From Paraphysomonas bandaiensis (Eukaryota > Protista > Chrysophyceae), in NCBI GenBank assembly GCA_965644295.1, contig CBFFRP010000267.1:1-64000 (forward strand): DNA of 64,000 nt, given 5' to 3'. The notes below the pieces were generated by a model. The model ran no database searches. It was not told where the DNA came from and saw only the letters and a program-made list of their open reading frames with translations. The position numbers were made by a program, and so were the translations under genes. This document shows positions 8,323 to 37,853 of this stretch, piece after piece; position 1 is the first letter of the stretch; each line of letters starts with the position of its first letter.

Positions 8323-8904
8323 TATGAGTTGACAAGAAATAACAGCACGACGTATGTCTAAGGAGTACGCACCAGGATATGGCAGTACTTAATAAGTACA
8401 TATATATGTACAGTACATATCATGAATAGGAATACATGCATGACCAACCCACATCTACACATTGGACAAACTCAGTGTTGTGGGATGGACAAAATATGGA
8501 GGTTTCAGGAAAATGGCTGCTTTTGATATCAGAGTATGCACAAAACAAAGATTTCTATGCTTTTTTTGATGTGTTTCTTGTACTAAAACTCTTTCGGTGT
8601 ATTGTTGAGAGTTGAGAGCAAATATTCAGTTTTTGACATCTGTCAGCCTCTCCGTATTGTACGTACAGAACTCAGATTATTCTTGCTACTTCTTGTATAC
8701 AGCTAAAAAAATACTTGGAAGTTCACCTGAGGCCTGAGGGGGTTGGTGAGATCTCATGTACTATACATGCATAGTGCTGCTGTATGGATATGCTCGGAAT
8801 GTATGACTGCTGCTGTATATCCACAACACATACATATATAAAATCATATGCATAATATCACACTATACACCAGTTAATAGAGTACACTGATCTCCATCAA
8901 TACA

Positions 8905-11829
8905 ATGAGTGAAGAATGGAATGAACAACGATTCCGTGAACAAGTAGAGACGGCTCTGGTTCATGCTCGACGTGTGCTGGATAATGATAAGCGGCCTGTG
9001 TTTCCCGCAGATGTGAGTCACCAGTACCAGGACAAGTATCTTCTCTCTGATATGGTGGCTAATTTAGCTCTTGCTGCTACTGTCAATACACTCTCTACGA
9101 TCGGATCGATGGAATCTTGTTTCAACCGAATGATTGAATGGTCTCGATCGAAATCAGTCTCTCTGCGATTCACTTCAACGGAACGATGTGTGTTTCTAAG
9201 AGAGACCAAACGAGATGTTGACTCAGCCACGAAGCATGTAACGGAGTTTTCGTATGGTCCAAAGATTACGAGCAAGACCGTTACGACAATAACGGAATAT
9301 TTCTGGAGGTTTGAATGCACTTATGAAGTGGTAGCATTCTGCGGGACAGGCGAGTCGCCAGGTGATTCTATACAGATATTTCAGAAATCTGGGAAAACTG
9401 AGATCAAAACAAATGTGGAGAATGCACCACACAGTGAAGTGGTAGTTCGAGATCCCGTGGATGTAAATATAACGCACTTGCTTCAGCTATTAGCACCTGG
9501 GGAGGAACCGGGATCGTCCACCGCAACACCATTATTCAGAATCAACAGAGAGCTTGACACTTGTCACACTCCTCGCAGAAATAAGCAAGTGGAAGATCTC
9601 TTAATCTGTTACCGAGACTTGTTTATATGGTGCGGGGAAGTGCACCGTTATTTCACATCTGTGCTCTTTCCCGTGGAACAGGAAAGTGGTCTTGATCTAG
9701 GCGCAATCCACGTTCGCGATATATTTGTTCCTGTAGTTCCTTTAATGATAGACTCCTCTATTTCTCCGTCCGGTAGTTCGGCCCGTGCGATAGAGGATGT
9801 GACAAGTGCACCCTCTGGTCGTGTCCGCAGACAGGGTTCTCACGACCTGACAGCAACCACGAACCTTCCCGAAGGTGGTCTACAAAATCGCGGTCAATCT
9901 CCTGAAGTCGTGCTTGGCGTTCATCAGGTTGAAAGCTTTTTAAACGAAGAGGCACGATCTCTGCAATCATGTTTCGAAAAGATGGACGCAGTGTTTCCAT
10001 CCCGGACAGCCACTGCCACTCTGATAACCGCTGCTGAGGGATCACTTTTAATCACACTGCTACATATTCAACAGCTTTGTCAGCATTACAAGGACGCGGT
10101 AGACTACATTGAGAGTCTCATCCGAGAGCAGTTGGTGAGTGCTATTGGTAAAGTTGTGACTCCAGAAGACTTCAATCACTACATGAGATTTCACAACACC
10201 AAACTATTCCGTGCCGAGTATGCACCCCGTCCGTTCTGTCACGCCATACGCCGCTCCCCTGACCATGCACCAGAGGGTGTGCTCAGCATTGAACAGTACT
10301 GCGATAATTCCATCCCCGAGCCAATAGCAACTGTAGTGAGTCGCAGTGTAGCTTCAACACCCATGAAATTCACGCTCAACGCTGCAACATCTGTCTCGTT
10401 TACTGGTGAACGATATTTACACGCACACATGATGCATAAGTTCGAGAGTGAACGTCTACCCATGTGTGAAGTCATTGGATGTCAAGCTCCTTGTTTAACA
10501 CTTCGTGCGGAAGCTAGACAGTTCAGTAGCTTTATCATCCTCATTGGACGTATTTCAAGTGCGACTACATTTGAACCCAAGTACGGCATGATTGTTAAAG
10601 ACAAGGACGAAATAAGTATCCCTTTGGACCTGGAGACAATTCCTTCTGCCAAGGAATTTAAGGACGCCATCGCGAGTCTATCCCCCGAGCAACAAAGGTT
10701 TGCTAAGGCCTTCCGAGGTATGCAGCTGGAGAGTACTTTATTTGGCGTATGCGTAATTCAGATCAAGCCGCAGCTGGAGAGAGTGTTGAAACTTCCACCT
10801 GACAGCCTCACGAAAGAAATTCGTCTTGCTCAGGACCTAATGGAGATGTTCATTAAGTATCAAATTCCCTCCGATCTCATGTCGTATGATGGAGAGGACA
10901 TAGCGTCTGTAAAGGAGAAGCTCGATAGGGTAAAAGGTCATGTTAGTGCACTCCGCGATATGATACGTTCTGCCGAGGATAAGGAGATTGAGGAGCAGAA
11001 GCAAGAGAGATTGTATCATGACCCTTTTGCTAATAATCAATCTGTTGGCGGTACGTTTGGAAGTTCCCAGGAACAGCGAGGGAACTTTTCGTTTGGTTCA
11101 AAGGGGATACCTCTTGCTCCTGCTACATTTTCATTGGAAACAGCAGGTGGAATTGAGGCACCAAGTGGAGGTGGAGGACTTCGGACACGTCGTCTTTCTT
11201 CTCGGTCTGCCGAACCTCCTAAAAGTGTAATGGATCAAGTACCTCCTTCTCCACCACGATCTGCAGCGGTCCGTGAGGAGATTCAGCATCTCAGCGAACC
11301 CAGTGCACCCAATCGTCAAGACACTGGTATACCTGATACTTCTCAAGATTCAGTCGAGGAAGCCCCGCCAGGTGTGACAGACTATACGAAGATTCCTCAC
11401 CAGCTGGATAGCAAATTTGAGTCCATGGATAAGGAAGGATCTGTTCGTCCGACTATTATCAATGTTGGTAGCACGTGGAGCAAAAAATTCAAAAAGTCAT
11501 TGTTAGCTGATGTCACTACCAGCACACTTCGTTCTGATAAGCAGAAGAGTGAGAAGGTCGCAGCGTTTGATCTTCTAGACGCTCTGTCGAAATCGGGAGG
11601 GTTACAGATTGAGGATGCAGCTCTACACGTTGTGATGGCTGCTACCCATTGCTTCGACAGGAATCTTATGGATACAATTGTCCAGAAGAGTGTGAATCCC
11701 ATCGAGAAGGTGGAGCACTCAACAATGATTATGGCTACTATTGTGCATGATCAACCCGTCGAAGCGCTTGTGAAGAGTGATCAATTGCCCCGTTTACTTG
11801 AATTTTCACCCACTTTGAGTGAACTGTGA
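8905..11829 (+). CDS. Uncharacterised 974-aa protein, copy A of the inverted pair
   Basis: Long intronless ORF with ordered-looking blocks (e.g. SLSPEQQRFAKAFRGMQLESTLFGVCVIQIKPQLE, YQIPSDLMSYDG); no function recognised. Confidence 0.9.
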   Translation: MSEEWNEQRFREQVETALVHARRVLDNDKRPVFPADVSHQYQDKYLLSDMVANLALAATVNTLSTIGSMESCFNRMIEWSRSKSVSLRFTSTERCVFLRETKRDVDSATKHVTEFSYGPKITSKTVTTITEYFWRFECTYEVVAFCGTGESPGDSIQIFQKSGKTEIKTNVENAPHSEVVVRDPVDVNITHLLQLLAPGEEPGSSTATPLFRINRELDTCHTPRRNKQVEDLLICYRDLFIWCGEVHRYFTSVLFPVEQESGLDLGAIHVRDIFVPVVPLMIDSSISPSGSSARAIEDVTSAPSGRVRRQGSHDLTATTNLPEGGLQNRGQSPEVVLGVHQVESFLNEEARSLQSCFEKMDAVFPSRTATATLITAAEGSLLITLLHIQQLCQHYKDAVDYIESLIREQLVSAIGKVVTPEDFNHYMRFHNTKLFRAEYAPRPFCHAIRRSPDHAPEGVLSIEQYCDNSIPEPIATVVSRSVASTPMKFTLNAATSVSFTGERYLHAHMMHKFESERLPMCEVIGCQAPCLTLRAEARQFSSFIILIGRISSATTFEPKYGMIVKDKDEISIPLDLETIPSAKEFKDAIASLSPEQQRFAKAFRGMQLESTLFGVCVIQIKPQLERVLKLPPDSLTKEIRLAQDLMEMFIKYQIPSDLMSYDGEDIASVKEKLDRVKGHVSALRDMIRSAEDKEIEEQKQERLYHDPFANNQSVGGTFGSSQEQRGNFSFGSKGIPLAPATFSLETAGGIEAPSGGGGLRTRRLSSRSAEPPKSVMDQVPPSPPRSAAVREEIQHLSEPSAPNRQDTGIPDTSQDSVEEAPPGVTDYTKIPHQLDSKFESMDKEGSVRPTIINVGSTWSKKFKKSLLADVTTSTLRSDKQKSEKVAAFDLLDALSKSGGLQIEDAALHVVMAATHCFDRNLMDTIVQKSVNPIEKVEHSTMIMATIVHDQPVEALVKSDQLPRLLEFSPTLSEL

Positions 11830-13379
11830 GCGTAAGTCTCCCTTCAGTCGCGAAGTTCGAAATAATTTGCAATATTTATTGTGAGTGTGAGAGGTTTGAT
11901 AATTGAAGTGTTATTTGTTATTTATTATTTTAATACAGAATTATTAAATACAATTTTTTCTTACTTACTCTGGTCTTGCTTTTACTGAATTTAGGTCAGC
12001 ATTACTATTGTGTGTTACAATACAAATTTAATGTCGACTTAGTAGTAGCTGCAGCACGAAACACGTAGTTGAATTTTGTCTAAAGTGGTACAACTTGTTG
12101 GAATTCCTCTTACTTACGTTTAACTATTAGACCACATTCCAAGTGTCATATATAGTTAGTCATCTGACCCGAACTCACGCGAAATCAGAATATGATTCAT
12201 TCTCAAACTTATTATGTTTTTAACAGTACTATGTTTTTTATAATATACAAACTCTACCTTTTTTTTAATTATACAGCGTAAGATGGACTCGGTGTGGCAG
12301 CAGTGTACTCGTGATTTTAGCTTGCAGGGAGATCGAGGAATTGATGTCGATGTAGATCACCTACTATAATAATGTAGGACTTGTACTCATCTTAAACGCC
12401 ATTTCGACGTAGAGTCATCCCGTTCTGTACACGAAGTGTAATTATATACCGGTTAAAATTAAGTCGAGGAAATACAAAGACCTGGTATTAAATATTATTT
12501 TACTATAATTTGTATATATGTGAGGTTAAAGATAATAGTTGTTATTAGAAGTTTTTTTACTGCTTCTTCTACTTGTGTTCTTTTTGTATGATCATATTCT
12601 CATATAGCTGCATTATTTATATGCCTCTCGTCAGAATTCAAATGCTCCAATCGTATAGCTTGATTTTAGATACATTGCATACGCATGCAATCTCCACCAC
12701 TACTACATGCAATAACACCGCTACTACTTGCAGTAGTATTTTAGTACCTATGCTCCGAGCCGACATGGCAATACCTGTTGGTGGCATATTATTACAAGTA
12801 GATGAAGGATCATTTGCAGGTAGAGAATCATCATTTTTTCTCATCAAAAGATCATGAAGTTCTGCTAGACCTGGCATCATTAGTGCCTGACGAAGTTCAG
12901 CAACAGCGGGAGGTATGAGATCTGCTTTCTGTTGGGATTCGACGACCACCATCTTTATGAACAGTATTACTTACTTACCCTGTATAATACATGCTTACTG
13001 TGTAAACGTTATATGAAGTGTGGTGGTGTTTGTTTTACATATTTTATGAATATAATATACTAGAGGAACTTCTTTGTCTAAATATAGTACGATATCAGAG
13101 TGAATCATTAATTAGTTACATTGGTTTGCTACAACAGTTCTGACTCTTACACACCTATTGTTAATAATCAGATATTTACTACTATCGACACTAAATTATT
13201 TTCACATTATTTTGAAGCGTTTATTCAATTCTACAGAGTACTTTTTATACACGTAATTGTAACAAATATCAACATACTTGTTATAAATTCCCGCTCCGCA
13301 TCTGACTTGATAATATTAAACAGGGTCCCTTGAATCAACTTCAAATGCAGATTTATTATTCTTTAGTTGTTCGAGACGG

Positions 13380-13565
13380 TTACAATAAGCGATATGAGAG
13401 GAAGTATGAGCCCTCTCTTTACAAATCCCGTTACATATGATCTTCTTCCAAGACACTTGTTGGGCATTCAAATATATTTCTAAAGTCTGTATCCCTGCAG
13501 TAGAACATCCTGTGCATCTACTAAGTTTCATTTCCAGTTACAGACAGAGATGACATTTCCCCCTT
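13380..13565 (-). pseudogene. Decayed MYND-type zinc-finger coding fragment in the palindrome spacer
   Basis: Reads GKCHLCL*LEMKLSRCTGCSTA...QQVSWKK...GICK, matching MYND Cys spacing (CxxC...RCxxC...W..H...C) with an in-frame stop and apparent frameshifts. Confidence 0.45.
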
Positions 13566-14035
13566 GAATTTGGAACAATAATGTATATATGTTACATTTG
13601 TTTACTTTTGAACATTTTCTTTGTTTAGATCGTTAAAGAAAAGTTATGTCCTCGTTAGACTAAATATTGCATATTATACGTTGTCATGTAAAATGTACAA
13701 CACATCGAAAAATTGTTTTACATCTTTGATGTCTCCTCTGATCAACTTCAGTATCTCAAAATGTCATGTTACTTTAGCTATATATAATATTTATGACTAC
13801 GTGTTAAGTGTTACAGCTACTACTAAGTCGACATTAAATTTGTATTGTAACACACAATAGTAATGCTGACCTAAATTCAGTAAAAGCAAGACCAGAGTAA
13901 GTAAGAAAAAATTGTATTTAATAATTCTGTATTAAAATAATAAATAACAAATAACACTTCAGTTATCAAACCTCTCACACTCACAATAAATATTGCAAAT
14001 TATTTCGAACTTCGCGACTGAAGGGAGACTTACGC

Positions 14036-16882
14036 TCACAGTTCACTCAAAGTGGGTGAAAATTCAAGTAAACGGGGCAATTGATCACTCTTCACAAGCG
14101 CTTCGACGGGTTGATCATGCACAATAGTAGCCATAATCATTGTTGAGTGCTCCACCTTCTCGATGGGATTCACACTCTTCTGGACAATTGTATCCATAAG
14201 ATTCCTGTCGAAGCAATGGGTAGCAGCCATCACAACGTGTAGAGCTGCATCCTCAATCTGTAACCCTCCCGATTTCGACAGAGCGTCTAGAAGATCAAAC
14301 GCTGCGACCTTCTCACTCTTCTGCTTATCAGAACGAAGTGTGCTGGTAGTGACATCAGCTAACAATGACTTTTTGAATTTTTTGCTCCATGTGCTACCAA
14401 CATTGATAATAGTCGGACGAACAGATCCTTCCTTATCCATGGACTCAAATTTGCTATCCAGCTGGTGAGGAATCTTCGTATAGTCGGTCACACCTGGCGG
14501 GGCTTCCTCGACTGAATCTTGAGAAGTATCAGGTATACCAGTGTCTTGACGATTGGGTGCACTGGGTTCGCTGAGATGCTGAATCTCCTCACGGACCGCT
14601 GCAGATCGTGGTGGAGGAGGAGGGACTTGACCCATAGCATTTGTGGGGCGTGCAGCCGACTGCGGTGAAAAACCAACCGATCTGGAAAATCCTTTGTTCC
14701 TTGACACAGACTTCTTCTTGGGCAAATTCACGGACTCAGACAATGCTGATCTTTCAGCTAAAGGGTCATGATACAATCTCTCTTGCTTCTGCTCCTCAAT
14801 CTCCTTATCCTCGGCAGAGCGTATCATATCGCGGAGTGCACTAACATGACCTTTTACCCTATCGAGCTTCTCCTTTACAGACGCTATGTCCTCTCCATCA
14901 TACGACATGAGATCGGAGGGAATTTGATACTTAATGAACATCTCCATTAGGTCCTGAGCAAGACGAATTTCTTTCGTGAGGCTGTCAGGTGGAAGTTTCA
15001 ACACTCTCTCCAGCTGCGGCTTGATCTGAATTACGCATACGCCAAATAAAGTACTCTCCAGCTGCATACCTCGGAAGGCCTTAGCAAACCTTTGTTGCTC
15101 GGGGGATAGACTCGCGATGGCGTCCTTAAATTCCTTGGCAGAAGGAATTGTCTCCAGGTCCAAAGGGATACTTATTTCGTCCTTGTCTTTAACAATCATG
15201 CCGTACTTGGGTTCAAATGTAGTCGCACTTGAAATACGTCCAATGAGGACGATAAAGCTACTGAACTGTCTAGCTTCCGCACGAAGTGTTAAACAAGGAG
15301 CTTGACATCCAATGACTTCACACATGGGTAGACGTTCACTCTCGAACTTATGCATCATGTGTGCGTGTAAATATCGTTCACCAGTAAACGAGACAGATGT
15401 TGCAGCGTTGAGCGTGAATTTCATGGGTGTTGAAGCTACACTGCGACTCACTACAGTTGCTATTGGCTCGGGGATGGAATTATCGCAGTACTGTTCAATG
15501 CTGAGCACACCCTCTGGTGCATGGTCAGGGGAGCGGCGTATGGCGTGACAGAACGGACGGGGTGCATACTCGGCACGGAATAGTTTGGTGTTGTGAAATC
15601 TCATGTAGTGATTGAAGTCTTCTGGAGTCACAACTTTACCAATAGCACTCACCAACTGCTCTCGGATGAGACTCTCAATGTAGTCTACCGCGTCCTTGTA
15701 ATGCTGACAAAGCTGTTGAATATGTAGCAGTGTGATTAAAAGTGATCCCTCAGCAGCGGTTATCAGAGTGGCAGTGGCTGTCCGGGATGGAAACACTGCG
15801 TCCATCTTTTCGAAACATGATTGCAGAGATCGTGCCTCTTCGTTTAAAAAGCTTTCAACCTGATGAACGCCAAGCACGACTTCAGGAGATTGACCGCGAT
15901 TTTGTAGACCACCTTCGGGAAGGTTCGTGGTTGCTGTCAGGTCGTGAGAACCCTGTCTGCGGACACGACCAGAGGGTGCACTTGTCACATCCTCTATCGC
16001 ACGGGCCGAACTACCGGACGGAGAAATAGAGGAGTCTATCATTAAAGGAACTACAGGAACAAATATATCGCGAACGTGGATTGCGCCTAGATCAAGACCA
16101 CTTTCCTGTTCCACGGGAAAGAGCACAGATGTGAAATAACGGTGCACTTCCCCGCACCATATAAACAAGTCTCGGTAACAGATTAAGAGATCTTCCACTT
16201 GCTTATTTCTGCGAGGAGTGTGACAAGTGTCAAGCCCTCTGTTGATTCTGAATAATGGTGTTGCGGTGGACGATCCCGGTTCCTCCCCAGGTGCTAATAG
16301 CTGAAGCAAGTGCGTTATATTTACATCCACGGGATCTCGAACTACCACTTCACTGTGTGGTGCATTCTCCACATTTGTTTTGATCTCAGTTTTCCCAGAT
16401 TTCTGAAATATCTGTATAGAATCACCTGGCGACTCGCCTGTCCCGCAGAATGCTACCACTTCATAAGTGCATTCAAACCTCCAGAAATATTCCGTTATTG
16501 TCGTAACGGTCTTGCTCGTAATCTTTGGACCATACGAAAACTCCGTTACATGCTTCGTGGCTGAGTCAACATCTCGTTTGGTCTCTCTTAGAAACACACA
16601 TCGTTCCGTTGAAGTGAATCGCAGAGAGACTGATTTCGATCGAGACCATTCAATCATTCGGTTGAAACAAGATTCCATCGATCCGATCGTAGAGAGTGTA
16701 TTGACAGTAGCAGCAAGAGCTAAATTAGCCACCATATCAGAGAGAAGATACTTGTCCTGGTACTGGTGACTCACATCTGCGGGAAACACAGGCCGCTTAT
16801 CATTATCCAGCACACGTCGAGCATGAACCAGAGCCGTCTCTACTTGTTCACGGAATCGTTGTTCATTCCATTCTTCACTCAT
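14036..16882 (-). CDS. Uncharacterised 948-aa protein, copy B of the inverted pair
   Basis: Matches copy A except E/G (RINRELD vs RINRGLD), I/V (FIILIG vs FIVLIG) and a shorter, different internal segment after RLYHDP. Confidence 0.9.
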   Translation of the reverse strand: MSEEWNEQRFREQVETALVHARRVLDNDKRPVFPADVSHQYQDKYLLSDMVANLALAATVNTLSTIGSMESCFNRMIEWSRSKSVSLRFTSTERCVFLRETKRDVDSATKHVTEFSYGPKITSKTVTTITEYFWRFECTYEVVAFCGTGESPGDSIQIFQKSGKTEIKTNVENAPHSEVVVRDPVDVNITHLLQLLAPGEEPGSSTATPLFRINRGLDTCHTPRRNKQVEDLLICYRDLFIWCGEVHRYFTSVLFPVEQESGLDLGAIHVRDIFVPVVPLMIDSSISPSGSSARAIEDVTSAPSGRVRRQGSHDLTATTNLPEGGLQNRGQSPEVVLGVHQVESFLNEEARSLQSCFEKMDAVFPSRTATATLITAAEGSLLITLLHIQQLCQHYKDAVDYIESLIREQLVSAIGKVVTPEDFNHYMRFHNTKLFRAEYAPRPFCHAIRRSPDHAPEGVLSIEQYCDNSIPEPIATVVSRSVASTPMKFTLNAATSVSFTGERYLHAHMMHKFESERLPMCEVIGCQAPCLTLRAEARQFSSFIVLIGRISSATTFEPKYGMIVKDKDEISIPLDLETIPSAKEFKDAIASLSPEQQRFAKAFRGMQLESTLFGVCVIQIKPQLERVLKLPPDSLTKEIRLAQDLMEMFIKYQIPSDLMSYDGEDIASVKEKLDRVKGHVSALRDMIRSAEDKEIEEQKQERLYHDPLAERSALSESVNLPKKKSVSRNKGFSRSVGFSPQSAARPTNAMGQVPPPPPRSAAVREEIQHLSEPSAPNRQDTGIPDTSQDSVEEAPPGVTDYTKIPHQLDSKFESMDKEGSVRPTIINVGSTWSKKFKKSLLADVTTSTLRSDKQKSEKVAAFDLLDALSKSGGLQIEDAALHVVMAATHCFDRNLMDTIVQKSVNPIEKVEHSTMIMATIVHDQPVEALVKSDQLPRLLEFSPTLSEL

Positions 16883-17168
16883 TGTATTGATGGAGATCAG
16901 TATACTCTATGTAAATAGATGATGTCTGCTATGTATATTAATCCTATGCTTTAGCATACGTGTACACTGGTATGTATTGTTTATGTATAGGATGGATACA
17001 CTTCAGGCATATCTTCCTTGATGTATCTTGAAAAGACACTACTATGAGATGGTGTGGGTTTTTACATACAAAAAAGAACTATTTATCTCACAAACTACAC
17101 ACTTTTTTGTCCAATCCAGAAATGAAAAGTCTGCAAACCGGATTTTCTTGTGATATGAAATATGCAGG

Positions 17169-17170
<2 letters not shown>

Positions 17171-17200
<30 letters not shown>

Positions 17201-17346
17201 TGTATGTATGTATGTATGTATGTATGTATGTATGTATGTATGTATGTATGTATGTATGTATGTATGTATGTATGTATGTATGTATGTATGTATGTATGTA
17301 TGTATGTATGTATGTATGTATGTATGTATGTATGTATGTATGTATG

Positions 17347-17380
<34 letters not shown>

Positions 17381-17484
17381 TGTATGTATGTATGTATGTA
17401 CTGGTGTATGTATGTATGTATGTATGTATGTATGTATGTATGTATGTATGCATGTATGTATGTATGTATGTATGTATGTATGTA
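17171..17484. repeat. (TATG)n microsatellite, ~310 bp, in a divergent intergenic region
   Basis: Near-perfect tetranucleotide array with a few interruptions; it produces the spurious YIHT/MYVC ORFs in the track. Confidence 0.99.
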
Positions 17485-17630
17485 TACGTAAGTATGATCT
17501 ATATGTACCACTCATATACGTGCCAGGAATATGAAGCAGAATAGTATATTCGGCTATATATTAATCTAAGAGGAACTCACTTCCCTCTAGTAACATAAAC
17601 ATTAAACCACACTATATATCGATCTCAAGT

Positions 17631-18952
17631 ATGTTAATTTCATTCGGATTAAATGAAGATGGTCAATGTGGATCGAAAAGGTCGTTATCATTCTATATAT
17701 CATCAAACTCTCTTGTAATTATATTATCAACAGAAGAACAAGTGAAATAGATTCACAAGAAAGAAAAGGATCTCCTCAATCTCCTTTATCTCCTATAAGG
17801 AAAAGAATGATGAGTTCAATGGTAAAACAAGGATCTGTTCCAACTGTTCTATCGTTCCCTGTATTATGTCGTATTAAGTCAGTAGCAGCCGGGTCTCGTC
17901 ATTCTCTGGCACTCTCAGAGGATGGTAGAGTGTTTGCATGGGGATGGGGGCTTCTGGGACAGCTCGGTCTAGGACACAATAAGAATATTCATAACCCTGT
18001 TCAAATTCCTGGGTTTTCCGAACCAGTGGTGTCAGTATCTGCAGGCGGCATGCACTCTGCATGTATCGATGAGCTAGGGCAGTGCTATACTTGGGGCTCT
18101 GCTCAATATGGGCAGCTAGGACAAGGTGAAATGGCAGTTGAGGATTCCATCCGTAATGCGCCTGGAAAAGTAACCGCTCCGGACTGTGTGGATCGATTCG
18201 TTCTCAAGAGGGTGGCTTGTGGGGGCATGCATACCGCTGCAATCGATGACGATGGGGCCGTGTGGTGTTGGGGTCGTGCGGATAGCGGCCAGGCAGGCTG
18301 TGGTCAGTGGTTGTTTAACTTTTTTTCTGGGTTGGTGGTGCCGCACCGAGTGACGGCGGTCACAGAACCGGCCACCGCAGTGGCATGTGGGGGCTTTCAT
18401 ACTGTTGTTGTAACTGAAGCAGGCAGAGTGTTTTCCTTTGGGAAGGAGGATTTCGGCATGCTTGGTACAGGAAACGGTGGAGATGGGGGAAAGCCAAAAA
18501 TCATAGAGGCTATTCGGGATAAGCGTGTGGTAGGCGTAGCTTGTGGAGGTTGGCACACATTGTTGTGGACTGATGAGGGGGAGATGTTCGCATGTGGAAA
18601 GGGAGAGTACGGTCGATTGGGCCTGGGGCATGAAGAATCCCGTACAGAGCCCACTAAAGTTGACTTAGGAGAAGATGTGCGGGTTGTGGCTGCCTCTGCA
18701 GGAGGTTCGCACTCAATGATTCTGACTTCTGCTGGAGTGGTGTATGCGGTGGGCCGGACGGACGATGGAAGATTGGGAGTTGATGGAGTCAGTGGGGACA
18801 GACTCTGTACACCTGCTCGTATAGACGGAAAATTTATTGCTCCACATTTTGAAAATCCAAAAGTCACACAGGTGTGTACAGGAGGCTCACATTCTTTTGT
18901 TTTGACTTCAGCCGAGGATAAAGATGCCCCATCAGTGTCAGTTCTGGGTTAG
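17631..18952 (+). CDS. RCC1-repeat (UVR8/HERC RLD-like) beta-propeller protein; exon 1 17631-17680, intron 17681-17733
   Basis: Repeated VAxGxxH(S/T)...(W/F)GxxxxGQLG motifs; upstream exon MLISFGLNEDGQCG splices in frame to RTSEIDSQ. Confidence 0.9.
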
Positions 18953-25117: not shown

Positions 25118-28100
25118 TCACGCAAACCCAAACCCTTCAGAGCCTTCCTTGATTGCTAAGAGAAGTTTTTCGCGTAGTTCTTCTTGACTTGAATACTCGG
25201 GAAGATCGAGCTATGCAAAACAGCAACATAATTATCTGAATGACACAGTTGGGTCAACAAACAAACCTGGTTAAAACATGTATGTGCTGTAGGTAAGTTA
25301 GCACTGTCTCCGTATGCCCGATGTATGGAAAAACGCTGCACGCCCCGCATGCCCTGAAGGTTGGCAAATCCATCCAGAGGTACCTGGTTATCACATATGT
25401 AAACTCTTTGTGAGCAACAACTAGAAGATACCCACTTTAGAGGTTCCAGTAATAAATTGTAGAAACAAAGCCCGTTCTTCTCTCGAGAAACTTCGTAGTA
25501 CGTCCCAAAACCAGAGTATACATGGTTCCGAAGCTCTGTACTGGTGATATTCCGTGTTCGCCTTAAGGTCGTCAATGTCTATATCAGGCAAACCAGAGAT
25601 GAGTAGCTCCAGCTCTGTCGGAGAGAAAATAGATATCAGTTCCGCGGGAACAAGGTCATGGAAACCCTGCAAGAAGCAGTCGATCTGAGAACGAATTGCT
25701 GAAGTCATGCTGTGGTGGGAGATCAGTCGAATGTAATCTGCTTTGTTACTATCCGTAACAGGAATGTTTCTGCCGTTTGGAATCAAATCCACCACCTGCA
25801 TATAAATTTACCAGAGAATGTTGCTGTGATAAAGCCACAAACCTCATGCCGCCCAAACGTTTGCACATCCGAAGAAAACGTTAATTCCAGACCCAAGTCC
25901 TCAAGTGGATACTCCAGGATCTGCTTGAGTGATTTAAAATACTCTGGCTCGATGCCCTCGATATCACTGTACTCCACTGGTACCCCCAATACGTGCTTAT
26001 AGAAAGACCTGAAAGAATCATGACCAAAGATCCCTACAAAAATAGCCATATACCTCGTGAAATGTCCATCCAGCAAGTATCCATCGACGACTGCTTTCCC
26101 TATCACCCGCCCGACAAACTTAAAGTAATCTAAGTGATTTGTATTGATATTGCTCAAGGGGTTCGGCTGAAATGTCGCACCATCAGCAGCTCCGGTGAAT
26201 AAGCAATAGTTGGGGTTGAATATTTCCCGTGAAAGTAGCATATACCATTCCCTCGTGAGGCCACCAGCATCAATACCCTCCTCCTCATAAAAGTTCACTA
26301 CAAGGCGACCCTTCATCTCATCCGGTGTGCGGAAACGGAGCTGATGGAAAGAATCCTCAAACACATTGTCTCGACGGACCTGGAGGTGAATTGTCCTCCC
26401 ACCTCTGGGCAGTCTCCGCTTCTTCAACTGCGAGTAGAAATATGCCCTCTTATTGTCAAACACAAGATGAGAACGCAGCTGCGATATCCGTATCATGGCA
26501 GATAATGAGTCTTCCAAAAGTGAAGGGTAGGATCGCACAAGAATATTCAATATACTTTTGTGTGCCTGAACAAACGACAGTAACCTCTGTGCTCTACCCA
26601 TGCTATGAGAGCCTAATCCAGATACGCTGTCCGAGGACGGGGTGCTCCGGAGAGAGCGTGTGTGCCGAAAAGACAGCTTACTACCACTATCATCCGTGTT
26701 GTCATTCAGAACAAGCGAGATATTGGAACGCAAAAAAGTAGAGGAGTCTCTGTACTTGGCCCCAGGAAGTGACTGCTGTTTCGAAAGCTGCAAGCCTTGA
26801 GTAAAAGAAGATGTACGCTCAAGTGCAGTCGCCTCAGCAGAGGACGCTGTGCCTTGAGCGTCATGTACAACTGACTGACACCTATCCAGCTCCTTCTCCT
26901 GAAGAATGTCCCCGGCATGCACAAGAAAGAAACCTTCAATTACTGGGAGCAATTTCGAAAGAATAGATGATAGAACAGAGTGTTGCTGTCTGCGTTGGCC
27001 CCCCGCCGGGCCAGACAGGACACTACCCTGGCTACTCTCCGTCTCCTGTACATACGTTTCAAGATGACGCAAAACCTGCTCTGTTGCTAACCAAAGATGC
27101 TGCAAGTCGTCAACTGGGGCAACGTCAACCAGCTTACTGTCCACCTTTTCTGCAAGGGATTGCAGCGTTTGAAGTGCCCGTAATACCCTTGTGTGATCCT
27201 GGCTGCCGACCTCGCCAATAGGAATGTTTAGAACAGATGACGATCCAGCTCCACTATCACTAGAAGAAACGGTATTCTGCTGTTTCGCTCGCTGGTTGAC
27301 AAGGTGGCTAAGTACGTGCTGCATGCGGGCGTGAGACACCGTTCCAAGATCAACTAAAACTTCAATCACGACCTCCATGAGGATCGTGCGGTTTTCCTTG
27401 ACATGCGCAAGACGAGATATCGCTGATATGACGTGGTCAAACACTTCTTTCGTGCAGAGCTCGTTTAATAATGCATCACAGAGAGACCGTAGCGTTGATC
27501 GCGACAAACAAACACTCGGAACATTAACCCATCTATAACTACCAGATGTCTCTTCTTCGACATTTTCTTCTCCCTCAGGAACTTCATCCAACAACTCAAG
27601 CGGTTCACAAAGAGTATTAACGAGGCGTGTGAGCTGGAGAAGCTCTTGTGTGCTATTCGTGTAGTTCGGGGCATGAAGAAGACGAATCAGCAGCTCTAAG
27701 TAGCACTGACTTTTCTGATAATCTGTCTCAATATCACCCTCACCGTCGTCCAAAATCTGCATTAGACACTGGCCTTGCGCTCGAGAACGCAAGATATCAT
27801 ATACAATTGATTCATTGGCAGCACACAAGTGAATCAGCATAGAAATGAGTCGTTTACCAACAGTGGATGGCAATGGTTTAGCTGTCAGGTCCTGTTCATC
27901 TGGAGTACTGAGTGTGGCGCCCACACGAGAACTAATTATCAATTTCTCCGGCGGGAAGGAATTACCTAATCTAAGAGGGCCTTCTCTCATCTGGCGGAAT
28001 ATAGAGGTCTCTCTCGGGCTATCCGACAGCAACGCTATAATGAGCTGTAACATCATATCACGAATGCTCTCTTGCTTCGAAAGATTTTGTAGCATTCTGT

Positions 28101-31100
28101 GCAACTGGCGAATAGGAACTGGTAACTTTTCCAGATACATAAGTCGTATCAGAACTGCTAAAATATCATGGGGTACCATCACATCCTGCACTGAATCCAC
28201 CTCTACTCTCATTTGTCCAGGGTGTGATGGACCAGGAGCAGGTGTTTCCTTTCCGTCCCCACCTTCGTCTTTAGATTCTTCACGGGCACCACTGGAGGAC
28301 TCCCTGGTCACAGGATCTGATGCTCCCATCATACCCACTTGATTCCACCTATGAGCCGCACGCTCACGCAGTAATTGCGCTTCTGCAATAAGTTCGGGAG
28401 TGAGGGTAGCAATAAAAGCCGAGTCAGAGGTAAGCAAAACCTCCGCACGCAAATCAGGGGTCAGCGATGTCAAGAACGACGAGTTGTCCATTTCCTCTGC
28501 ATGAGAAGGATCTGCGGGAACAGAGAACTCAGCAGAGGCAGTGTTGTCTCTTTCTCGACGAACTTGGTCAAGAATCTCCTGTCGGATATTGTCTGGGAGT
28601 GCATTGATGGTCTCAAGGTCATATCCAGCTTCAACTAAGAGTTCGTTAGACTGATCAGAGGTCTCTTCATGAGTTTCGATTATTTCTCTCTGCATGAATT
28701 CGGGCAGGGAATTGAATACCTCTGCATCATAGCCGGGAGGACATACCAAGCCGGAGGTAGCAGGGGCACTCTCCCCCGTATCGTTCTCATTGGTATCCGC
28801 GGGTGAACCCTCAACTGTAGCCCCTATACTGTCGACATTATCCGTGTCTTGCATAATACGAACAAGTTGATTCGCCAGGATTTGTTCGTCTGGGTCAGCA
28901 CCGTCATACTCAGTCTCAGGCTCATCCCTGACCTCCACATCCACATTCCTCTCATCTACAACAGGCAGGTTCTCAGCTTCACTAGTGTGAACATCTACCA
29001 CATTGACATTACCCAGTTCAACACCAGTGGATTGATCACGTTCACAACCAGATTGCTCCAGAGTCGTTGCCGAGTCCTCAGCGCAATCGCTATTCTCATT
29101 CTCCACCTGCATCGAAATTGCGATGGTAGATGGACAGATCACCCTGCCCGTACCTTCGTCTTCAGCAATATCGACAGCACTGTGGGTGTGATCCGTGATA
29201 ATCTCAGCTGTACCATCTGTATCAATTATACCCGTATCTGATGTAACAATGTCCTGGTTGTTATCAGCACCATGCGCCGTGCCCACTCCACACTCATCAG
29301 TCGTTTGGTCAGGGTGCACATTTTGTTGTGCGCTGTTTATCACGTGTTGTGCATCTGCAGAATCTGATGCAGCAGGTTCGGCAGAAGAGCTTTGCTCTGA
29401 TTCACTATCATGCCCCTGTTCATTCGTTGAACCTCTCATAACCGGACTTGTCTCCAGCTGCACATGGCGACCTAGTATTGACCTGATTTCACCCATCACC
29501 GTAACAGACACTGGCCGAGACGCACTGGAGACGTCTCCAACACCCTCCGTCGCCAAGTCTCCGTCATTATCCCATCTCCCAGCACCCCTTCTCCCAGTCC
29601 CCCTGCTAGAGAATATAACATGCTCCACGCCCCTACCACGACTATCGAGTGACATATCAAGGAGCGGTCGCGATTGTACGAGCTCATCATATGCCGCCCG
29701 CTGATCAGAACTCCGCACTCCAGGTACCAACATGTTTTCAAAGAATTCCTCAATAGTATCCTCAGACTCCAATACAATTCGTCGATGGTCTGTACGCGCA
29801 GCTATAGAAACTCCTCCCCCATTCGCATTCACAAACCCACCCCTAGCATCATCCTGCGCGGCACCAATTAGCATGGGATGGCCTATCCGCCAATTCGCCT
29901 GCAGAGCACGATCGATTCCGCCAGGAAGAAGCGAGCATTCCTGCTGTTCGGCAGCGCGAGCTTCATCACTACCAGCCGCTTGAGCTGTTCGACTGCGTCC
30001 ACGCCCCCTCCAAGGGATCTGACCAGGAGAGGTTCGACGAATGAACTCTAGAAGAGTAGTACCATAATCCCCTTCGACCTCGACATCCTCAGTATCATCA
30101 CCCATCAAATGCATACCAGATCCAGCTTGAAGCGAAACTCCCCCAGTGTTCCCGCGTCGTACCTGATCTGGAGGAGTGATAAACTCACCGAATGGATTCC
30201 CATCAGACGGAAAAGTGTCCCGTAATAAGTCCAGGCCGTGAGTTGGACTAATGATGTCAGGACTGAACAGATTGCGCAAACCTGCATTAAGTTCGTCCGT
30301 CGTCAAATCATGACCCTCGTGTCGACTTATAAACCCACGCATATATCTCTCTTCATCATCGTCGTCGTCATCATCATCGTCCTCGTCATCATCATCCTCA
30401 TCTTCTTCTTCGTCTGGCTCCTCATCGTCATCATCATCTTCTGGATGAGAATTCGCACCGTCTTGATCAGTAGTATGATTTTCCACAGCATATGCTGCAT
30501 CAAAGCTCATGACGTTTTCGCGCCTTCCCTGCGACATATCAGATTCTCTATCCATTGAACCGCTGTCGTTAAACGTTTCGCCTTCTTCGCCCACTTTCTC
30601 CTCACCACTGCGCATGGATAAAGATCTTTTGAGTCGATGAAAGTGCAAAATAAATTTTGGTCGGGTGAGTATTTCTAATGGACCAAGCATAGCATCAAAC
30701 ACAGAGTCGCACCCACTAGACTCAATATCAACTGATGCCAGTGCCTGCACGATCAGAGTGGGTACACCACATTTCGAAAGATACAACATAGCATCCACAG
30801 AAACATGTTGACGGTCCTGCATAACACCTGCGGAGTCTTTAGGAGCTCTGCACGAGGTAACCACCAACGACAAAAGTCGGCCAACACGAGCCATGAACTG
30901 TAGTCGTTGCGCCTCGTTATGGAAGTACTTGTTCGTAGGAGATTTAGGAAGAGACAACTGCTTCAGAGTTTCCACAATAGAATCAAGAACAACTTTGCGA
31001 GGTCTACCACGGTTACAACTCAACACAGTCATGATCCTAGCAGCGCCCTGCACTTCTTCTGTGGCTGCTGAATTAGCTTTACAATTCTTTGACAGAAATG

Positions 31101-34100
31101 TCCTGATTAGATATGGAATAAAAAACTCGGACTGCAGACTCACAAAATTCATGCGACACTTCGCAACGAGTAGGGAAATTCCCTGCACAGACAAAATGCA
31201 ATCGGATAACGCGTTCAAGCATGCCCCATTCGAGAACATCATTTTGTCGGTATCATTAGGTGACGTAAAACGACTAATAAATACGGATAGAGTCATGAGA
31301 GCTCTTGACCCAGGAAATTGCTCAGAATCATCCCCTAGCTTGCACTCATCATCGTTCATGCCCTCAGACAATTTCACAGTTATGGGGTCAGCGATGGATT
31401 TCCTTGTAAAAACCAAGGACGACTCTGCAGCTGAAAGAAAAACTTCGGGGCTTCTGTAGATCAGATCGGCGCAGGCTTCCACCAGACTTACCAGTAGTAC
31501 AGGCTTGCCTGGATCCTTCTCTTCGAGAGTTTCGAATTTTGACTTGATTTTACTTCGCATACACAATTTTAATACTGGCTTCGTCTCAAAACACCGCCTC
31601 AAAATCATAGACAATAGAGGCTGCATATTCGCAGCCGCCGCATTAGATTCCTCATTGGAAGGTAGGGACAGTATCTTAACTAAACCATTGTTTTTAACCA
31701 GTCTATCAGCCACCTCATCCTTTGACAACAGCTCACACAAAACGAGCAATAGAGCATGGCACGTATCGTTATCCATTCGCAAATTGTCCCCCCCAGAATT
31801 AAGCAACATAGATTCAGTTGCTTCGTAGAGTTCCCAAAATGCATCGTTCTGTACAAGTTGGTTTCGCCCCATATCAATCAAAGTTGACGACGACACACTG
31901 TCAGTAGAGGGCTCCATCGACCCAATTGCGTCTTCTTTGCTTTCTGCTTGATGGGAGATGCTGCCCCTTTCATTCCCACTGTCCGCATTCGTCGATGAAT
32001 TGTTGTTCTTGGTGGACGCTACTAGATCATAGCATATCAATAATGCTGGTACAACCCAGCGGGGCCAGTATCGTATTTCACATGAGTTTTCTGTCTGGCG
32101 TGACATTGCCGTAGAAGGGACAGCAGAAATTAAGTGAACAATATTGTGAATTAGCTCTCCCACATAAGAAGAGGTGATTTCGCGCTCAATGTGCATGCGA
32201 TTCAACTTACTCCTCAGAAGTGAAAGTAAGAACATCAGGACACCGTGAAGTTGCTCAGTATCTCCCATTCGCACTCTGCTAGTCAAACTATGCAAAATGG
32301 AGGTCTGGTCTAGCTCAGGAAATGAAGAATGCATATTTAACAGAAACTCACACATTCGAGCAAACACCATACGTACAGCTACATCGCTCCATCCGAGCGT
32401 GATTTCCACATACTTCCATGCGTCCTCCACGAACGGAATAATACTCTTTCCATATTCTGCCATCAAACTTGCAGCTTGTATTGATATCTCTTCAGTTGTA
32501 GAAGACGCTTTTGGATCAGGACGTCCAGTTGCAGACACCTGGGACCGGCGAATCGACATAAGGCCCACTCGGTCGTCAGAATATGGGGTTACCACATCAT
32601 CTTCGATCTCTTCTCTTGGCGCTATCCATCGTCTACCGGGAGTGCGACGAAGTGAGTCGTCTTCCAACCCCATGGATTCGTTGGATATATTCCTCAGCCA
32701 TTGTGGCCTCTGGTGTAGAGGAAGTGGCGGAACAACCGAAGAGGATTCGTCTGGGGTCGATAATTCGGCATCACTCGGAAAGGTATTGACAAACATCGCG
32801 TCCATCTCTCGACTAAATTCAGTCATTTCGTCATGAGAACCTGTTTCTCGAGAATTACCACCATGATCTGGAGTATTATTCGTGGTTTCAGATGATGCTG
32901 CCTCTTCAGATGTAGGAATAATATTTCCACCCTGCGTGTTATGTTCATGTCCGCCTTCCTGTAAAGTATCCGACGATGGCGCACTAACTTCTGTTGTGGC
33001 CATAATGACACCATCTCCACCCCCTCTGTTCAAGGTCTCGACAGTGGATTCCTGTGTTGTTGGGTGCGTGAACAAGTACTCCATAACTACATCCAGGTCG
33101 CGCGACATTGTCGCATTTAGAGCATTTCTTATGTCGGCTCGACTGAACCCCATGTCCATGCCGACAGCTTCAACCTGATCAGGGGGAGAAAAGAGATGCG
33201 ATGCACGCGAGGGCCCAGAAGAGCGCGAATTCAAAATTCGTCCCATGGGACTTGTTGACTCCAGTGTAGAGGCATTGCGGTCACTCATACTATTGCGCGA
33301 TTTCGAAGAGGATACAGAATGGAGACTGGCAACCATATCAGTGACTATTCTCATCCACTCTATTTGCAATCCACTCGGAAATCGGGCAAAACTATTGGCT
33401 TTCAAAATTGGAAGCAGCGCCTGTCCTACTTGGAGAATGCCCTTCTGCAAAGCTTTTTCAAAATTCAAATCATTGTCATATGTACCAGTTGATATCAATG
33501 TATTGGTTGTAGAAGTCGGCTTATAGCGTTTATAATCAACGACTATATGAACTAACACAAGGAGGGGGCTAAGACTATGAAGGGCGCACCTAGAAGCAGG
33601 TGACAAAACAATTGCACTTGCCCTTCCTTCTTCTGCGGGGCCATTCGAAATTTTATCGAGTAATTCGCGATCCAGGTTACTGGCCGTGAACTGAAAAACA
33701 CACAGAGCATATTGTATAACACCTTGAGCTAAAAACCTCTTAAGTAAATATGTATTAGGATGACCGTTCTTATCGTCAAAGATTGACTGCACAATAAATT
33801 TAGACAAAGCTCCAAAGAAAAGGTGTGCGGTCGCTTCGTCGATATCAACACGGTCACAGCTATCATAACCCTCGTTACACCCTTCTTTACTGTCCCCCCA
33901 TGGTGTCTTCGCAGATGGTAGCTGAGCATCGTCGTTAGATGTGTTCTGTGGCTCTTCTTCGCTTAGGGTTCTATGTACTCCTTCAATGGGCCATTTACAG
34001 GCGATGTTGTTAGGTTGTGGATTCTCAAAAAACTTTGCAGTTATATTGGCCAAAGATCCCGCAACCAAAGAAGCCATATCTGATATGTGGAGGCAGTTAC

Positions 34101-37100: not shown

Positions 37101-37853
37101 CCGTTGGGCATAACAGGGGTTCCTGTCCACGCAAAAAATCGATCAATCCGTAGGAGTGAGACATAAACCCCAGAGCTTCAAACATGATCAGTACGTTGTT
37201 TGCTATGTTCGCAGAAACCTACACGAATAATCAACTAAAATACGTTGAGTGTCCAATCGCTAACATATACCTCTGTTGTATCTTTCCATCCCGTCTCCGC
37301 GTTATATGAAGCAATCGACAGAGAAGGCATCGAAAAGTAGAATAAGATCTCGGTCGCCAGCCCTACGACTTCGTGGTTCATAGAATACAGTAATTTTCCT
37401 ACCAGCTAGAGTCCAAGTGAGAATAGACAACATACATAGTAAATATTCTCACCTCTGTTGACAAAAAGTATCTCTTGTGCACAGAATTTTTTAGTACATA
37501 CGACAGATACTTCAAAGTAGCTATTAGCAACGTGTTTGTATATCCACTATCATGGGGCAATTCTTCTACACTTGCAGCTATAATCGTGTCCAACTTCTCA
37601 AAAACGGGAATAAGAAGCCTCACGTCGATCTGAACGAAATGTAACACACAGAGATATATGACGTCAACTGGACTCGAGTCCTTCATACCTGATTCGTTTT
37701 ACCAGATCTAGCATGTGATAAAAGAAGTTCCTCTAATTCACTACCAGATGCTTCAACTAGATTAGATACTTTAGTTTGAATAGATGAGTCGATAATATCA
37801 GGATGAATGCCATCTATTTCAAGGTACTTTGATAGCTTCATAGTTCTGAACAT
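25118..37853 (-). CDS. HUWE1: Giant HECT E3 ubiquitin ligase, HUWE1/UPL1/Tom1 type; multi-exon
   Basis: HECT domain (VRRDNVFEDSF, EEGIDAGGLTREWY, FLQFITGTSKVPLDGF, LPTAHTCFNQLDLPEY, terminal EGFGFA*), UBA (MGFSRADIRNAL), three UBM-like repeats (e.g. DAEVFNSLPEFMQREII), acidic tract, helical N-terminal region; the start codon (37853 or 37841) is inferred. Confidence 0.93.

Follow-up and report, generated by a model that had tools for sequence, protein, structure and literature searches.

Two nearly identical protein-coding genes that differ in a single internal, in-frame segment raise the question of how one stretch of a gene stays distinct while the sequence on either side of it stays the same, and what such a difference might be for. 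The window, by which we mean the whole 64,000-nucleotide stretch of Paraphysomonas bandaiensis DNA that was analysed, holds such a pair, here called genes A and B, which lie as convergent, tail-to-tail twins (Table 1). The two are paralogues coding for an uncharacterised protein of about 950 residues, and the family to which they belong is widely conserved in protists and lacks a Pfam model. The answer that we regard as probable is that interlocus gene conversion homogenises the folded framework of the protein while the heterologous linker escapes it.

Architecture of the locus

The copies had been read from the sequence as matching almost base for base for about 2.1 kb before and about 0.8 kb after one differing block, and a base-by-base alignment bears this out. 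In the 5′ arm 4 of 2151 nucleotides differ between A and B (at positions 8885, 9551, 10537 and 10968), and in the 3′ arm 3 of 803 (at 11379, 11475 and 11903). Outside the block, the two proteins are distinguished by the residue changes E216G and I545V only. An inverted-repeat search recovers the arms as one pair of 2155 nt (8877-11031 and 14756-16910, identity rounded to 100%) and a second pair of 878 nt at 97% identity (11192-12069 and 13796-14673). Both blocks were also said to keep the reading frame, which they do since their lengths differ by 78 nt, or 26 codons.

The homology of the 3′ arms decays over positions 12052-12069 and ends at 12069 in A and 13796 in B. Beyond the arms no residual homology between the A and B flanks was detected (z = 0.9 upstream and -0.9 downstream). 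The outer ends of the homology are abrupt and, together with the unrelated flanks, would equally fit the breakpoints of a duplication, which speaks against a reading by conversion.

Table 1 Features of the twin-gene locus in window coordinates.
Feature	Position	Strand	Remarks
5′ UTR of gene A	8783..8904	+	From transcript contigs; only the last 28 nt are shared with B
Gene A CDS	8905..11829	+	Intronless, 974 aa, Gly/FG-type linker; ORF and translation
5′ homogenised arm of A	8877..11027	+	Starts 28 nt before the ATG; codes for the folded N-terminal body, residues 1-707
Variable block of A	11028..11248	+	221 nt, 74 codons, residues about 708-782
Residual-homology part of the block	11192..11248	+	68% identical to 14673-14617
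3′ homogenised arm of A	11249..12069	+	Rest of the linker, C-terminal domain, stop codon and ~240 nt downstream
Unique AT-rich spacer between A and B	12070..13795	.	Spacer halves without mutual homology
Dispersed repeat in the spacer	~12485-12974		60+ genome copies at 70-87% identity
3′ homogenised arm of B	13796..14616	-	Repeat search and alignment
Gene B CDS	14036..16882	-	Intronless, 948 aa, basic/Ser-rich linker; ORF and translation
Variable block of B	14617..14759	-	143 nt, 48 codons
5′ homogenised arm of B	14760..16910	-	Repeat search and alignment

The framework protein and its family

In the AlphaFold model a large N-terminal body is folded, a linker of about 100 residues is disordered, and an alpha/beta domain forms the C-terminus. 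The 62.5-Mb assembly contains only three loci of the family, namely A, B and a distant third on contig C129, of which the family search used the first ORF alone and whose acidic linker is unrelated to those of A and B. The nearest relatives of the twins share at most 58% identity with them, and a scan of metagenome contigs, among which records close to this genome may be missing, brought up none closer than that; the nearest two for which the genomic context is available (contigs L068 and L069) have a single gene each. At greater distance, protist and Myxococcota members of the family share about 45% identity, and among 19 myxobacterial loci no conserved neighbours were found.

Searches for a function of the framework found none. 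In Pfam there was only a sub-threshold match to DUF7832, in NCBIfam none, and sequence and profile searches of the PDB were likewise without a match. Fold and features in the ESM Atlas gave no clue to function, and in Foldseek neither the whole model nor residues 436-706 gave a match at E ≤ 0.001. The best scores in a wide VIA-align search, Z = 7.1 (the BDLP stalk and ClyA-type helical bundles) and 5.1, lie below the meaningful level and therefore indicate a common arrangement of helices at most. The FG nucleoporin profile PF13634 matched neither protein A nor protein B at E ≤ 1, and a homologue (P0052) reaches 26.1 bits with it, under the cut-off of 32.2. Other members of the family carry R-SNARE, CRIB, ubiquitin-like or FG modules at the position of the linker.

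Transcription of both blocks

Both blocks are transcribed and unspliced. A transcript-type contig (L017) equals window positions 8783-11967 at 100% identity and is colinear with the genome, so that the transcript of gene A is unspliced; a possible intron in block A, with GTACGT at 11051, is ruled out by the same colinearity. A second transcript-type contig (L016) holds block B with both of its junctions and is colinear through the block. An alternative-splicing cassette or mutually exclusive exons are likewise ruled out, as the locus has two complete genes and both contigs follow the genome through the blocks.

Contig L016 joins the 5′ UTR of gene A to block B and has A-type variants at all seven arm sites. 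As it starts and ends at the same points as L017, the two would fit isoforms drawn from one assembly graph in which SNP bubbles had been popped. An MMETSP transcript (P0209) has the B-type residue G216. In the protein collection searched, no entry equals the protein of gene B exactly, and a scan for a B-specific 5′ junction pattern was blank. A-type and B-type variants are mixed in the transcript contigs, and the outer junction of B and its V545 are therefore without independent support.

The variable block and the linker

The translations agree with the composition first ascribed to the blocks, that of A being Gly-rich with FG motifs (net charge +2) and that of B basic (net charge +6) and also Ser-rich. 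The weak homology suspected at the 3′ end of the block is confirmed over 57 nt, with 68% identity and a local-alignment z of 5.3 against shuffles. Between the remaining 164 nt of block A and 86 nt of block B, homology was detected on neither strand, by which an inverted segment or a frame-shifted homologue is ruled out. Towards its 3′ edge the block loses its divergence by degrees, with 14 of 38, then 3 of 19 and then 0 of 130 nucleotides differing, and the 5′ edge is one of complete heterology; a clustering of arm differences near the edges was not significant (P = 0.08).

Divergence is 0.19% and 0.37% in the arms, synonymous and 3′-UTR sites counted, as against 32% in the alignable 57 nt. 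This roughly hundredfold difference implies that two diverged lineages of the gene have recombined. Among the 19 codons of the 57-nt stretch there are 10 non-synonymous and 5 synonymous changes, which leaves no visible constraint on it. A donor for block A or block B was sought as well, but the 62.5-Mb assembly yielded no further copy of either.

The pLDDT of residues 710-810 is below 50 nearly throughout in the AlphaFold model, which marks the predicted-disordered linker. The sequence-only reading had reckoned that the segment might simply be a disordered linker, just as unalignable in all single-copy orthologues. This holds in part, as the segment lies inside the predicted-disordered linker, and the linker sequence is unalignable across the whole family.

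Recurrence of the arrangement

A constant framework with a single variable segment, as it was first described here, is real in A and B and is repeated in independent genomes and transcriptomes of the family, where at least five other sets with a differing linker were found, all from single-celled organisms. On a 157-kb contig (L071), the two genes of a head-to-head pair are identical exactly from ATG to stop except for 9 differences and a 341-nt linker block. A 906-kb ENA contig, sampled through the excerpts L070, L072 and L073, which overlap or lie close together, has seven copies with frameworks 98-100% identical and flanks unrelated. Identical frameworks with alternative linkers are further found in the transcriptomes of Clydonella (three types) and Diplonema japonicum, in an MMETSP organism, in a JGI sample and in a GGOE transcriptome. 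In proteins P0096 and P0097, from two related organisms, a linker type is kept at 81% identity.

Of 496 informative site pairs in the seven-copy set, 205 are incompatible under the four-gamete test, and the copies have patches of variants in common in differing combinations. Together the two observations argue for gene conversion and against a tree-like series of duplications, and such mosaics mean that homogenisation of the framework does occur in the family. The conversion that the sequence-only reading had proposed is thus borne out in the analogue, whereas for A and B, being two copies with the nearest relative at 58% identity, it is not provable.

Origin of the twins

We infer that this pair was made by conversion and not by a very recent duplication. 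A and B would then be old paralogues, the flanks and part of the linker of which had already lost their homology. Conversion between the inverted copies would keep the 2.15-kb and 0.8-kb stretches of the folded parts near-identical. The heterologous stretch of the linker (221 versus 143 nt) would be unable to pair, so that conversion tracts would halt there and the stretch would be left as an island of old divergence. The outcome would be the same framework with either a Gly/FG-type or a basic/Ser-rich linker, each under a separate promoter. The assembly has only the three loci of the family and no further copy of either block; such homogenisation of the arms would need no lost donor.

The island may also be a neutral by-product, a reading opened by the disorder and unalignability of the linker, and one that appears possible if doubtful. 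Conversion would continue in the folded parts, held alike by purifying selection, the unconstrained linker, UTRs and flanks would drift past the pairing threshold and escape, and the linker difference would have no function, the copies being kept for dosage or for their different promoters. The linker is predicted to be disordered and cannot be aligned family-wide, the absence of visible constraint in its alignable part fits such drift, and so does the identity in the L071 pair, which spans exactly ATG to stop. Against it, homogenisation in A and B also takes in 114 nt of linker that is unconstrained, as well as about 240 nt of the 3′ flank. At least six independent sets moreover retain between two and seven copies whose linkers are distinct, a linker type is conserved between P0096 and P0097, and other members have folded or binding modules in the linker.

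It is unlikely that the twins are instead the product of a very recent inverted duplication, after which at most about 220 nt of linker was replaced in one copy. A diverged allele, or else a third paralogue since lost or left unassembled, would have supplied the new stretch through recombination or short-tract conversion. The abrupt outer ends and unrelated flanks would suit such an event, as would an arm divergence of merely 0.2-0.4% and the single gene in the nearest relatives with context. The donor it requires, however, is absent from the assembly, the sole other paralogue, that on C129, has an unrelated acidic linker, and the frameworks of the seven-copy analogue are demonstrably mosaic.

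A crossing-over between the inverted 5′ arms could invert the 3.7-kb interior and thereby swap the linker-plus-tail between the promoters. Such a flip-flop, which we hold to be rather improbable, is compatible with conversion and no alternative to it. The near-identical 2.15-kb inverted arms, seen as flanking inverted repeats of 2155 nt, are an adequate substrate, and a contig that joins the 5′ UTR of A to block B does exist; the same contig, however, is A-type in the 3′ arm too, which is unexpected from a single crossover in the 5′ arm.

An RNA-mediated origin, with one copy being a retrocopy of the other or of a splice form, or with cDNA as the donor in conversion, is still less probable. 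Both genes are intronless with an identity confined to roughly the transcription unit, and a cDNA donor would explain homogenisation limited to the CDS, as in the ATG-to-stop identity of the L071 pair; for the ribosomal-protein paralogues of fungi, a conversion that is mediated by cDNA and limited to the CDS has been put forward (PMC6993855). Neither copy, however, has a poly(A) tract where the homology ends (12069 and 13796), the first 94 nt of the 122-nt 5′ UTR lie outside the homology, which extends about 100 nt beyond the end of the transcript contig, and the genome has no intron-bearing parent with alternative linker exons. A processed duplicate in particular was rejected, there being no poly(A) tail and the homology ending away from the mRNA ends.

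Finally, that alleles of one locus, or variants from a mixture of strains, were placed side by side as an inverted repeat by the assembly is highly improbable: the block-B transcript contig with the 5′ UTR of A and A-type variants throughout, and the failure to find the exact gene B protein in the protein collection, would fit such an artefact, but the contig runs on in unique sequence, by 8.8 kb at one end and by 47 kb at the other, the upstream region of B is unrelated to that of A, and a 1.7-kb unique spacer separates the copies. A fold-back would give a perfect palindrome, the B-type G216 occurs in an independent MMETSP transcript, the matching ends of L016 and L017 would fit isoforms from one assembly graph, and analogous multi-copy loci stand in long-read contigs of other organisms.

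Possible role of the linkers

A role of the linker in specificity or localisation, as was suggested from the sequence, is plausible because other members of the family hold partner-binding modules at the same site. The linkers of A and B may accordingly steer a common framework to different partners or places. It can be suggested, if only tentatively, that the whole arrangement is a selected design in which one scaffold is provided with exchangeable disordered address labels. Stramenopiles, Amoebozoa and diplonemids would keep two to seven complete copies of the gene, and conversion would keep the folded framework identical while each copy has its own linker, FG/Gly, basic/RG, Pro-rich or Q-rich, with SNARE, CRIB or ubiquitin-like modules taking this place in other members. 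The linker would send one machine to different partners or compartments, and with such a gene set intron-poor protists would achieve in the genome what alternative splicing achieves elsewhere.

Within one protein family, the arrangement has either arisen or been retained in at least six sets that are independent of each other. If specificity does lie in the linkers, the twins amount to swap experiments made by nature that could reveal the role of a conserved framework, and they would show how isoforms can be made without splicing in intron-poor protists. If the linkers are neutral, the family offers a clean natural measure of the heterology needed to stop gene conversion.

Comparison with known systems

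That an island of divergence can survive concerted evolution is textbook knowledge; here the island takes the form of an entire non-homologous cassette within a linker predicted to be disordered. The palindromes of the human Y chromosome consist of inverted near-identical arms around a unique spacer and are kept so by intrachromosomal conversion. They measure tens of kb to Mb and contain whole genes, with no in-frame divergent cassette within a gene. The A/B locus resembles them in its near-identical inverted arms and unique spacer and differs in having such a cassette inside the gene. The clustered protocadherins, said to have been described in this respect by Noonan et al. in 2004, reportedly are many copies in which conversion homogenises some parts while the parts that determine specificity stay diverse. 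Their variable exons are spliced to shared constant exons, whereas each copy in the A/B family is a complete, separate and intronless gene.

A parallel can be drawn to exon 5 of the human red and green opsins, a peak of divergence between duplicates homogenised by conversion (Teshima and Innan 2008, reviewed in PMC3924837). The opsins are likewise neighbouring paralogues kept near-identical by interlocus conversion save for a short internal region of high divergence; their peak, however, is one of a few selected substitutions in alignable, folded sequence, while between A and B the peak consists of a cassette that is non-homologous, differs in length and lies in a predicted-disordered linker. 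The GOT1 paralogues of the copepod Tigriopus californicus are known from population data within one species (PMC3728101). Unlike in the A/B family, a disordered linker plays no part there, and the case does not recur in distant lineages. Finally, the fungal ribosomal-protein paralogues (PMC6993855) share with the genes in the window, in L070 and in L071 a homogenised CDS between unrelated promoters and flanks. The cDNA donor proposed for the fungal genes is unsupported for A and B, and the fungal genes are homogenised over their full length, whereas in A and B an internal segment has escaped.

Organization of the twin genes

A repeat search of the window identified genes A and B as an inverted repeat, and base-by-base alignment bears out the claim of the sequence-only reading that they are identical save for one in-frame segment, with four and three differences in the 5′ and 3′ arms, respectively. 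The homology begins just 28 nt 5′ of the ATG and stops approximately 240 nt past the stop codons. The two blocks differ by 78 nt, or 26 codons, and the reading frame is therefore kept in both. Outside the block, the proteins differ in only two residues (E216G and I545V), the remaining three coding differences being silent. The translations likewise display the Gly-rich block with FG dipeptides in A and the basic block in B that had been described; the net charges are +2 and +6, respectively, and the B block is also Ser-rich.

The weak homology noted at the 3′ end of the block is also real: the final 57 nt are 68% identical between A and B (z = 5.3 versus shuffles), and these 19 codons carry 10 non-synonymous and 5 synonymous codon changes. 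This alignable stretch has thus diverged approximately 100-fold more than the near-identical arms. The first 164 nt (A) and 86 nt (B) of the block have no homology on either strand, and neither do the 200–500 nt beyond both arm ends. The 5′ edge of the block is abrupt and the 3′ edge is graded, with differences at 14/38, then 3/19 and then 0/130 positions.

Coordinates of the twin genes, neighboring features and related loci
Feature	Location	Strand	Remarks
Gene A ORF	8905-11829	+	uninterrupted, 974 aa
Gene B ORF	14036-16882	-	uninterrupted, 948 aa; convergent with A
Start of twin homology	8877 / 16910
5′ arm			2151 nt; differences at 8885, 9551, 10537, 10968
Variable block of A	11028-11248	+	221 nt; residues 708-782
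Variable block of B	14759-14617	-	143 nt
3′ arm			803 nt; differences at 11379, 11475, 11903
End of twin homology	12069 / 13796
Spacer between A and B			1.7 kb; unique, AT-rich
Dispersed repeat in spacer	12485-12974		~480 nt; overlaps a 104-aa minus-strand ORF; 60+ genome copies, 70-87% identity
Microsatellite-like array	17091-17500		long, 8-nt period
ORF divergent from B	17666-18952
Very long ORFs past the twins	25783-34551; 34612-37185	-	2922 aa; 857 aa
C129 paralogue	G000:C129:52515-55435 (L003 590-3873)	-
Genes on 906-kb ENA contig	L070 5840-21172; L072 10001-12883; L073 10001-12781
Homologue in Gammaproteobacteria bin	L057 8001-11979		at least 8 segments, up to 68% identity

The array takes up much of the ~780-nt gap between gene B and the divergent ORF and hence sits in the presumed promoter of B.

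Genomic context and transcription

The genome assembly is eukaryotic (62.5 Mb, 669 contigs) and contains only one family locus besides A and B, a paralogue of ~50% identity on contig C129. It has an acidic linker and is broken into two ORFs exactly inside it, by either an intron or a frameshift; its product is absent from the protein collection.

Two contigs from JGI sample 3300017004, L016 and L017, look like transcripts because each ends in two extra A's. L017 matches window positions 8783-11967 at 100%, which indicates that gene A is transcribed with a 122-nt leader and that block A is retained in the transcript. L016 has the same ends and contains block B with both junctions, but carries the leader of A and A-type bases at 7/7 arm sites. 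The simplest reading would be that the two are alternative routes through a single short-read assembly graph whose single-base bubbles were popped. The MMETSP transcript P0209 combines the B-type G216 with block A; the G216 variant is therefore transcribed, and the twins are mis-phased in transcript assemblies. The protein collection has no exact match to the B protein, and the outer junction of B and the V545 variant are seen in the genome assembly alone.

Protein family and predicted structure

The protein is not recognized by Pfam or NCBIfam, while word-based searches retrieved hundreds of relatives of 850–1050 aa with 35–58% identity. These occur in stramenopiles, Amoebozoa (Physarum, Vannella, Clydonella, Arcella), alveolates (Chromera, Symbiodinium, Prorocentrum), Diplonema and approximately 50 Myxococcota genomes, one of them a closed Polyangiaceae chromosome of 9.9 Mb. 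The Myxococcota homologues are full-length (41–47% identity; contigs L018-L056), and no conserved neighbor genes are common to the myxobacterial loci. In the tree, every named Myxococcota sequence belongs to a single clade of 66 sequences (support 1.0). This clade is nested within eukaryotic ones and adjoins a group containing Physarum, which suggests a single transfer between domains in either direction. The homologue in an uncultured Gammaproteobacteria MAG bin resembles an intron-containing eukaryotic gene, and the bin is thus probably contaminated.

The AlphaFold model built with 100 homologues is confident (pLDDT 84.6, pTM 0.77), and neither the whole model nor its most conserved part, residues 436–706, had a convincing match among solved or predicted structures. 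Only two long stretches, residues 291–331 and about 710–810, are predicted to be disordered, and the variable block lies inside the second, the linker. In an alignment of 107 sequences, positions 701–820 of A are sparsely occupied and show an identity to A of 18% at most, and the flanking domains 40–87%. The majority of family linkers are Pro-rich; in P0003, the closest relative, the linker has an extended Gly-Phe-Gly repeat. Further linkers contain an R-SNARE (synaptobrevin) motif (P0075, P0077, P0108), a CRIB/PBD domain (P0198), a ubiquitin-like domain (P0201) or, below the Pfam cut-off, FG repeats (P0052). The linker is thus the portion of the protein under the weakest constraint and also a repeated insertion site of partner-binding modules.

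Near-identical frameworks with different linkers in other organisms

The proposed constant-framework, variable-segment arrangement recurs elsewhere. A screen of all retrieved proteins for pairs whose frameworks share 95% identity or more revealed three linker types (FG/Pro, RG-basic and Q/GGY) in Clydonella sp. ATCC 50884 and two types each in Diplonema japonicum, an MMETSP organism, a JGI sample and a GGOE transcriptome. One linker type of the JGI sample keeps 81% identity in a relative with a 95% identical framework. In D. japonicum, the linker of P0081 has a hydrophobic Cys-rich stretch resembling a lipidation or membrane-insertion signal, and the other variant is Lys/Arg/Ser-rich.

Two genomic cases have a nucleotide profile like that of the window. 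On a 157-kb ENA contig (L071), identity between two head-to-head genes with different linkers begins precisely at the ATG and continues to within 5 nt of the stop codon, broken only by nine single differences and a linker block of 341 nt. A 906-kb ENA contig carries seven genes with different linkers, four in tandem and at least two more 60–80 kb off among unrelated genes; six of the seven were placed in excerpts, and all located copies are on one strand. Their frameworks are 98–100% identical, the linkers 29–79% identical and the flanks unrelated. Of 57 variable sites in 1980 nt of framework, 32 are informative, 205/496 site pairs fail the four-gamete test, and multi-base patches are common to copies in differing combinations, which shows gene conversion among the copies rather than simple recent duplications. 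The linkers there are mosaics of shared sub-blocks, that of P0184, for example, beginning as in P0181 and ending as in P0179. In the tree, copies of one organism cluster together and the organisms lie far apart: the window falls among the stramenopile sequences, the 906-kb contig groups with Diplonema, and the 157-kb contig branches close to Amoebozoa.

Discussion

The sequence-only observation is confirmed, and the interpretation attached to it is supported in part and now reaches beyond this locus. The most economical reading is that interlocus gene conversion has shaped the twins from old inverted duplicates. Conversion would homogenize the framework-coding sequence, the adjacent linker and the 3′ flank, and its tracts would halt at the heterologous linker stretch, which would persist as an island of old divergence. 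The main alternative, in which the duplication is young and one copy acquired its linker from a donor since lost, requires an extra unseen copy and conflicts with the seven-copy analogue; no further copy of block A or block B is present in the 62.5-Mb assembly. Crossing-over between the arms may also have inverted the interior. For fungal ribosomal-protein genes, a cDNA donor has been proposed to account for conversion limited to the CDS (PMC6993855); in the window, retroposition or a cDNA donor is not supported, as a poly(A) tract is absent and the limits of homology do not coincide with those of the transcripts. The unique spacer, the separate upstream region of B and the continuation of the contig for 47 kb in unique sequence argue against an assembly artefact of the fold-back or allele kind.

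That the linkers serve as selected exchangeable labels, setting localization or partners as first proposed, is a tentative and rather doubtful idea. In its favor, multi-copy sets are kept in independent lineages, FG/Gly and basic flavors recur, related organisms have one linker type in common, and other members have binding modules in their linkers. Against it, the linker is the sole unconstrained stretch of the coding sequence, the alignable remnant of the block is without visible constraint, and a neutral escape from conversion predicts the identical picture. What is new, and merits experimental follow-up, is the recurrent confinement of divergence to a predicted-disordered linker cassette in an uncharacterized family of protists and Myxococcota. 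The twin locus, for its part, adds one more case to an evolutionary pattern already described, the "peak of divergence" (PMC3924837; PMC3728101).
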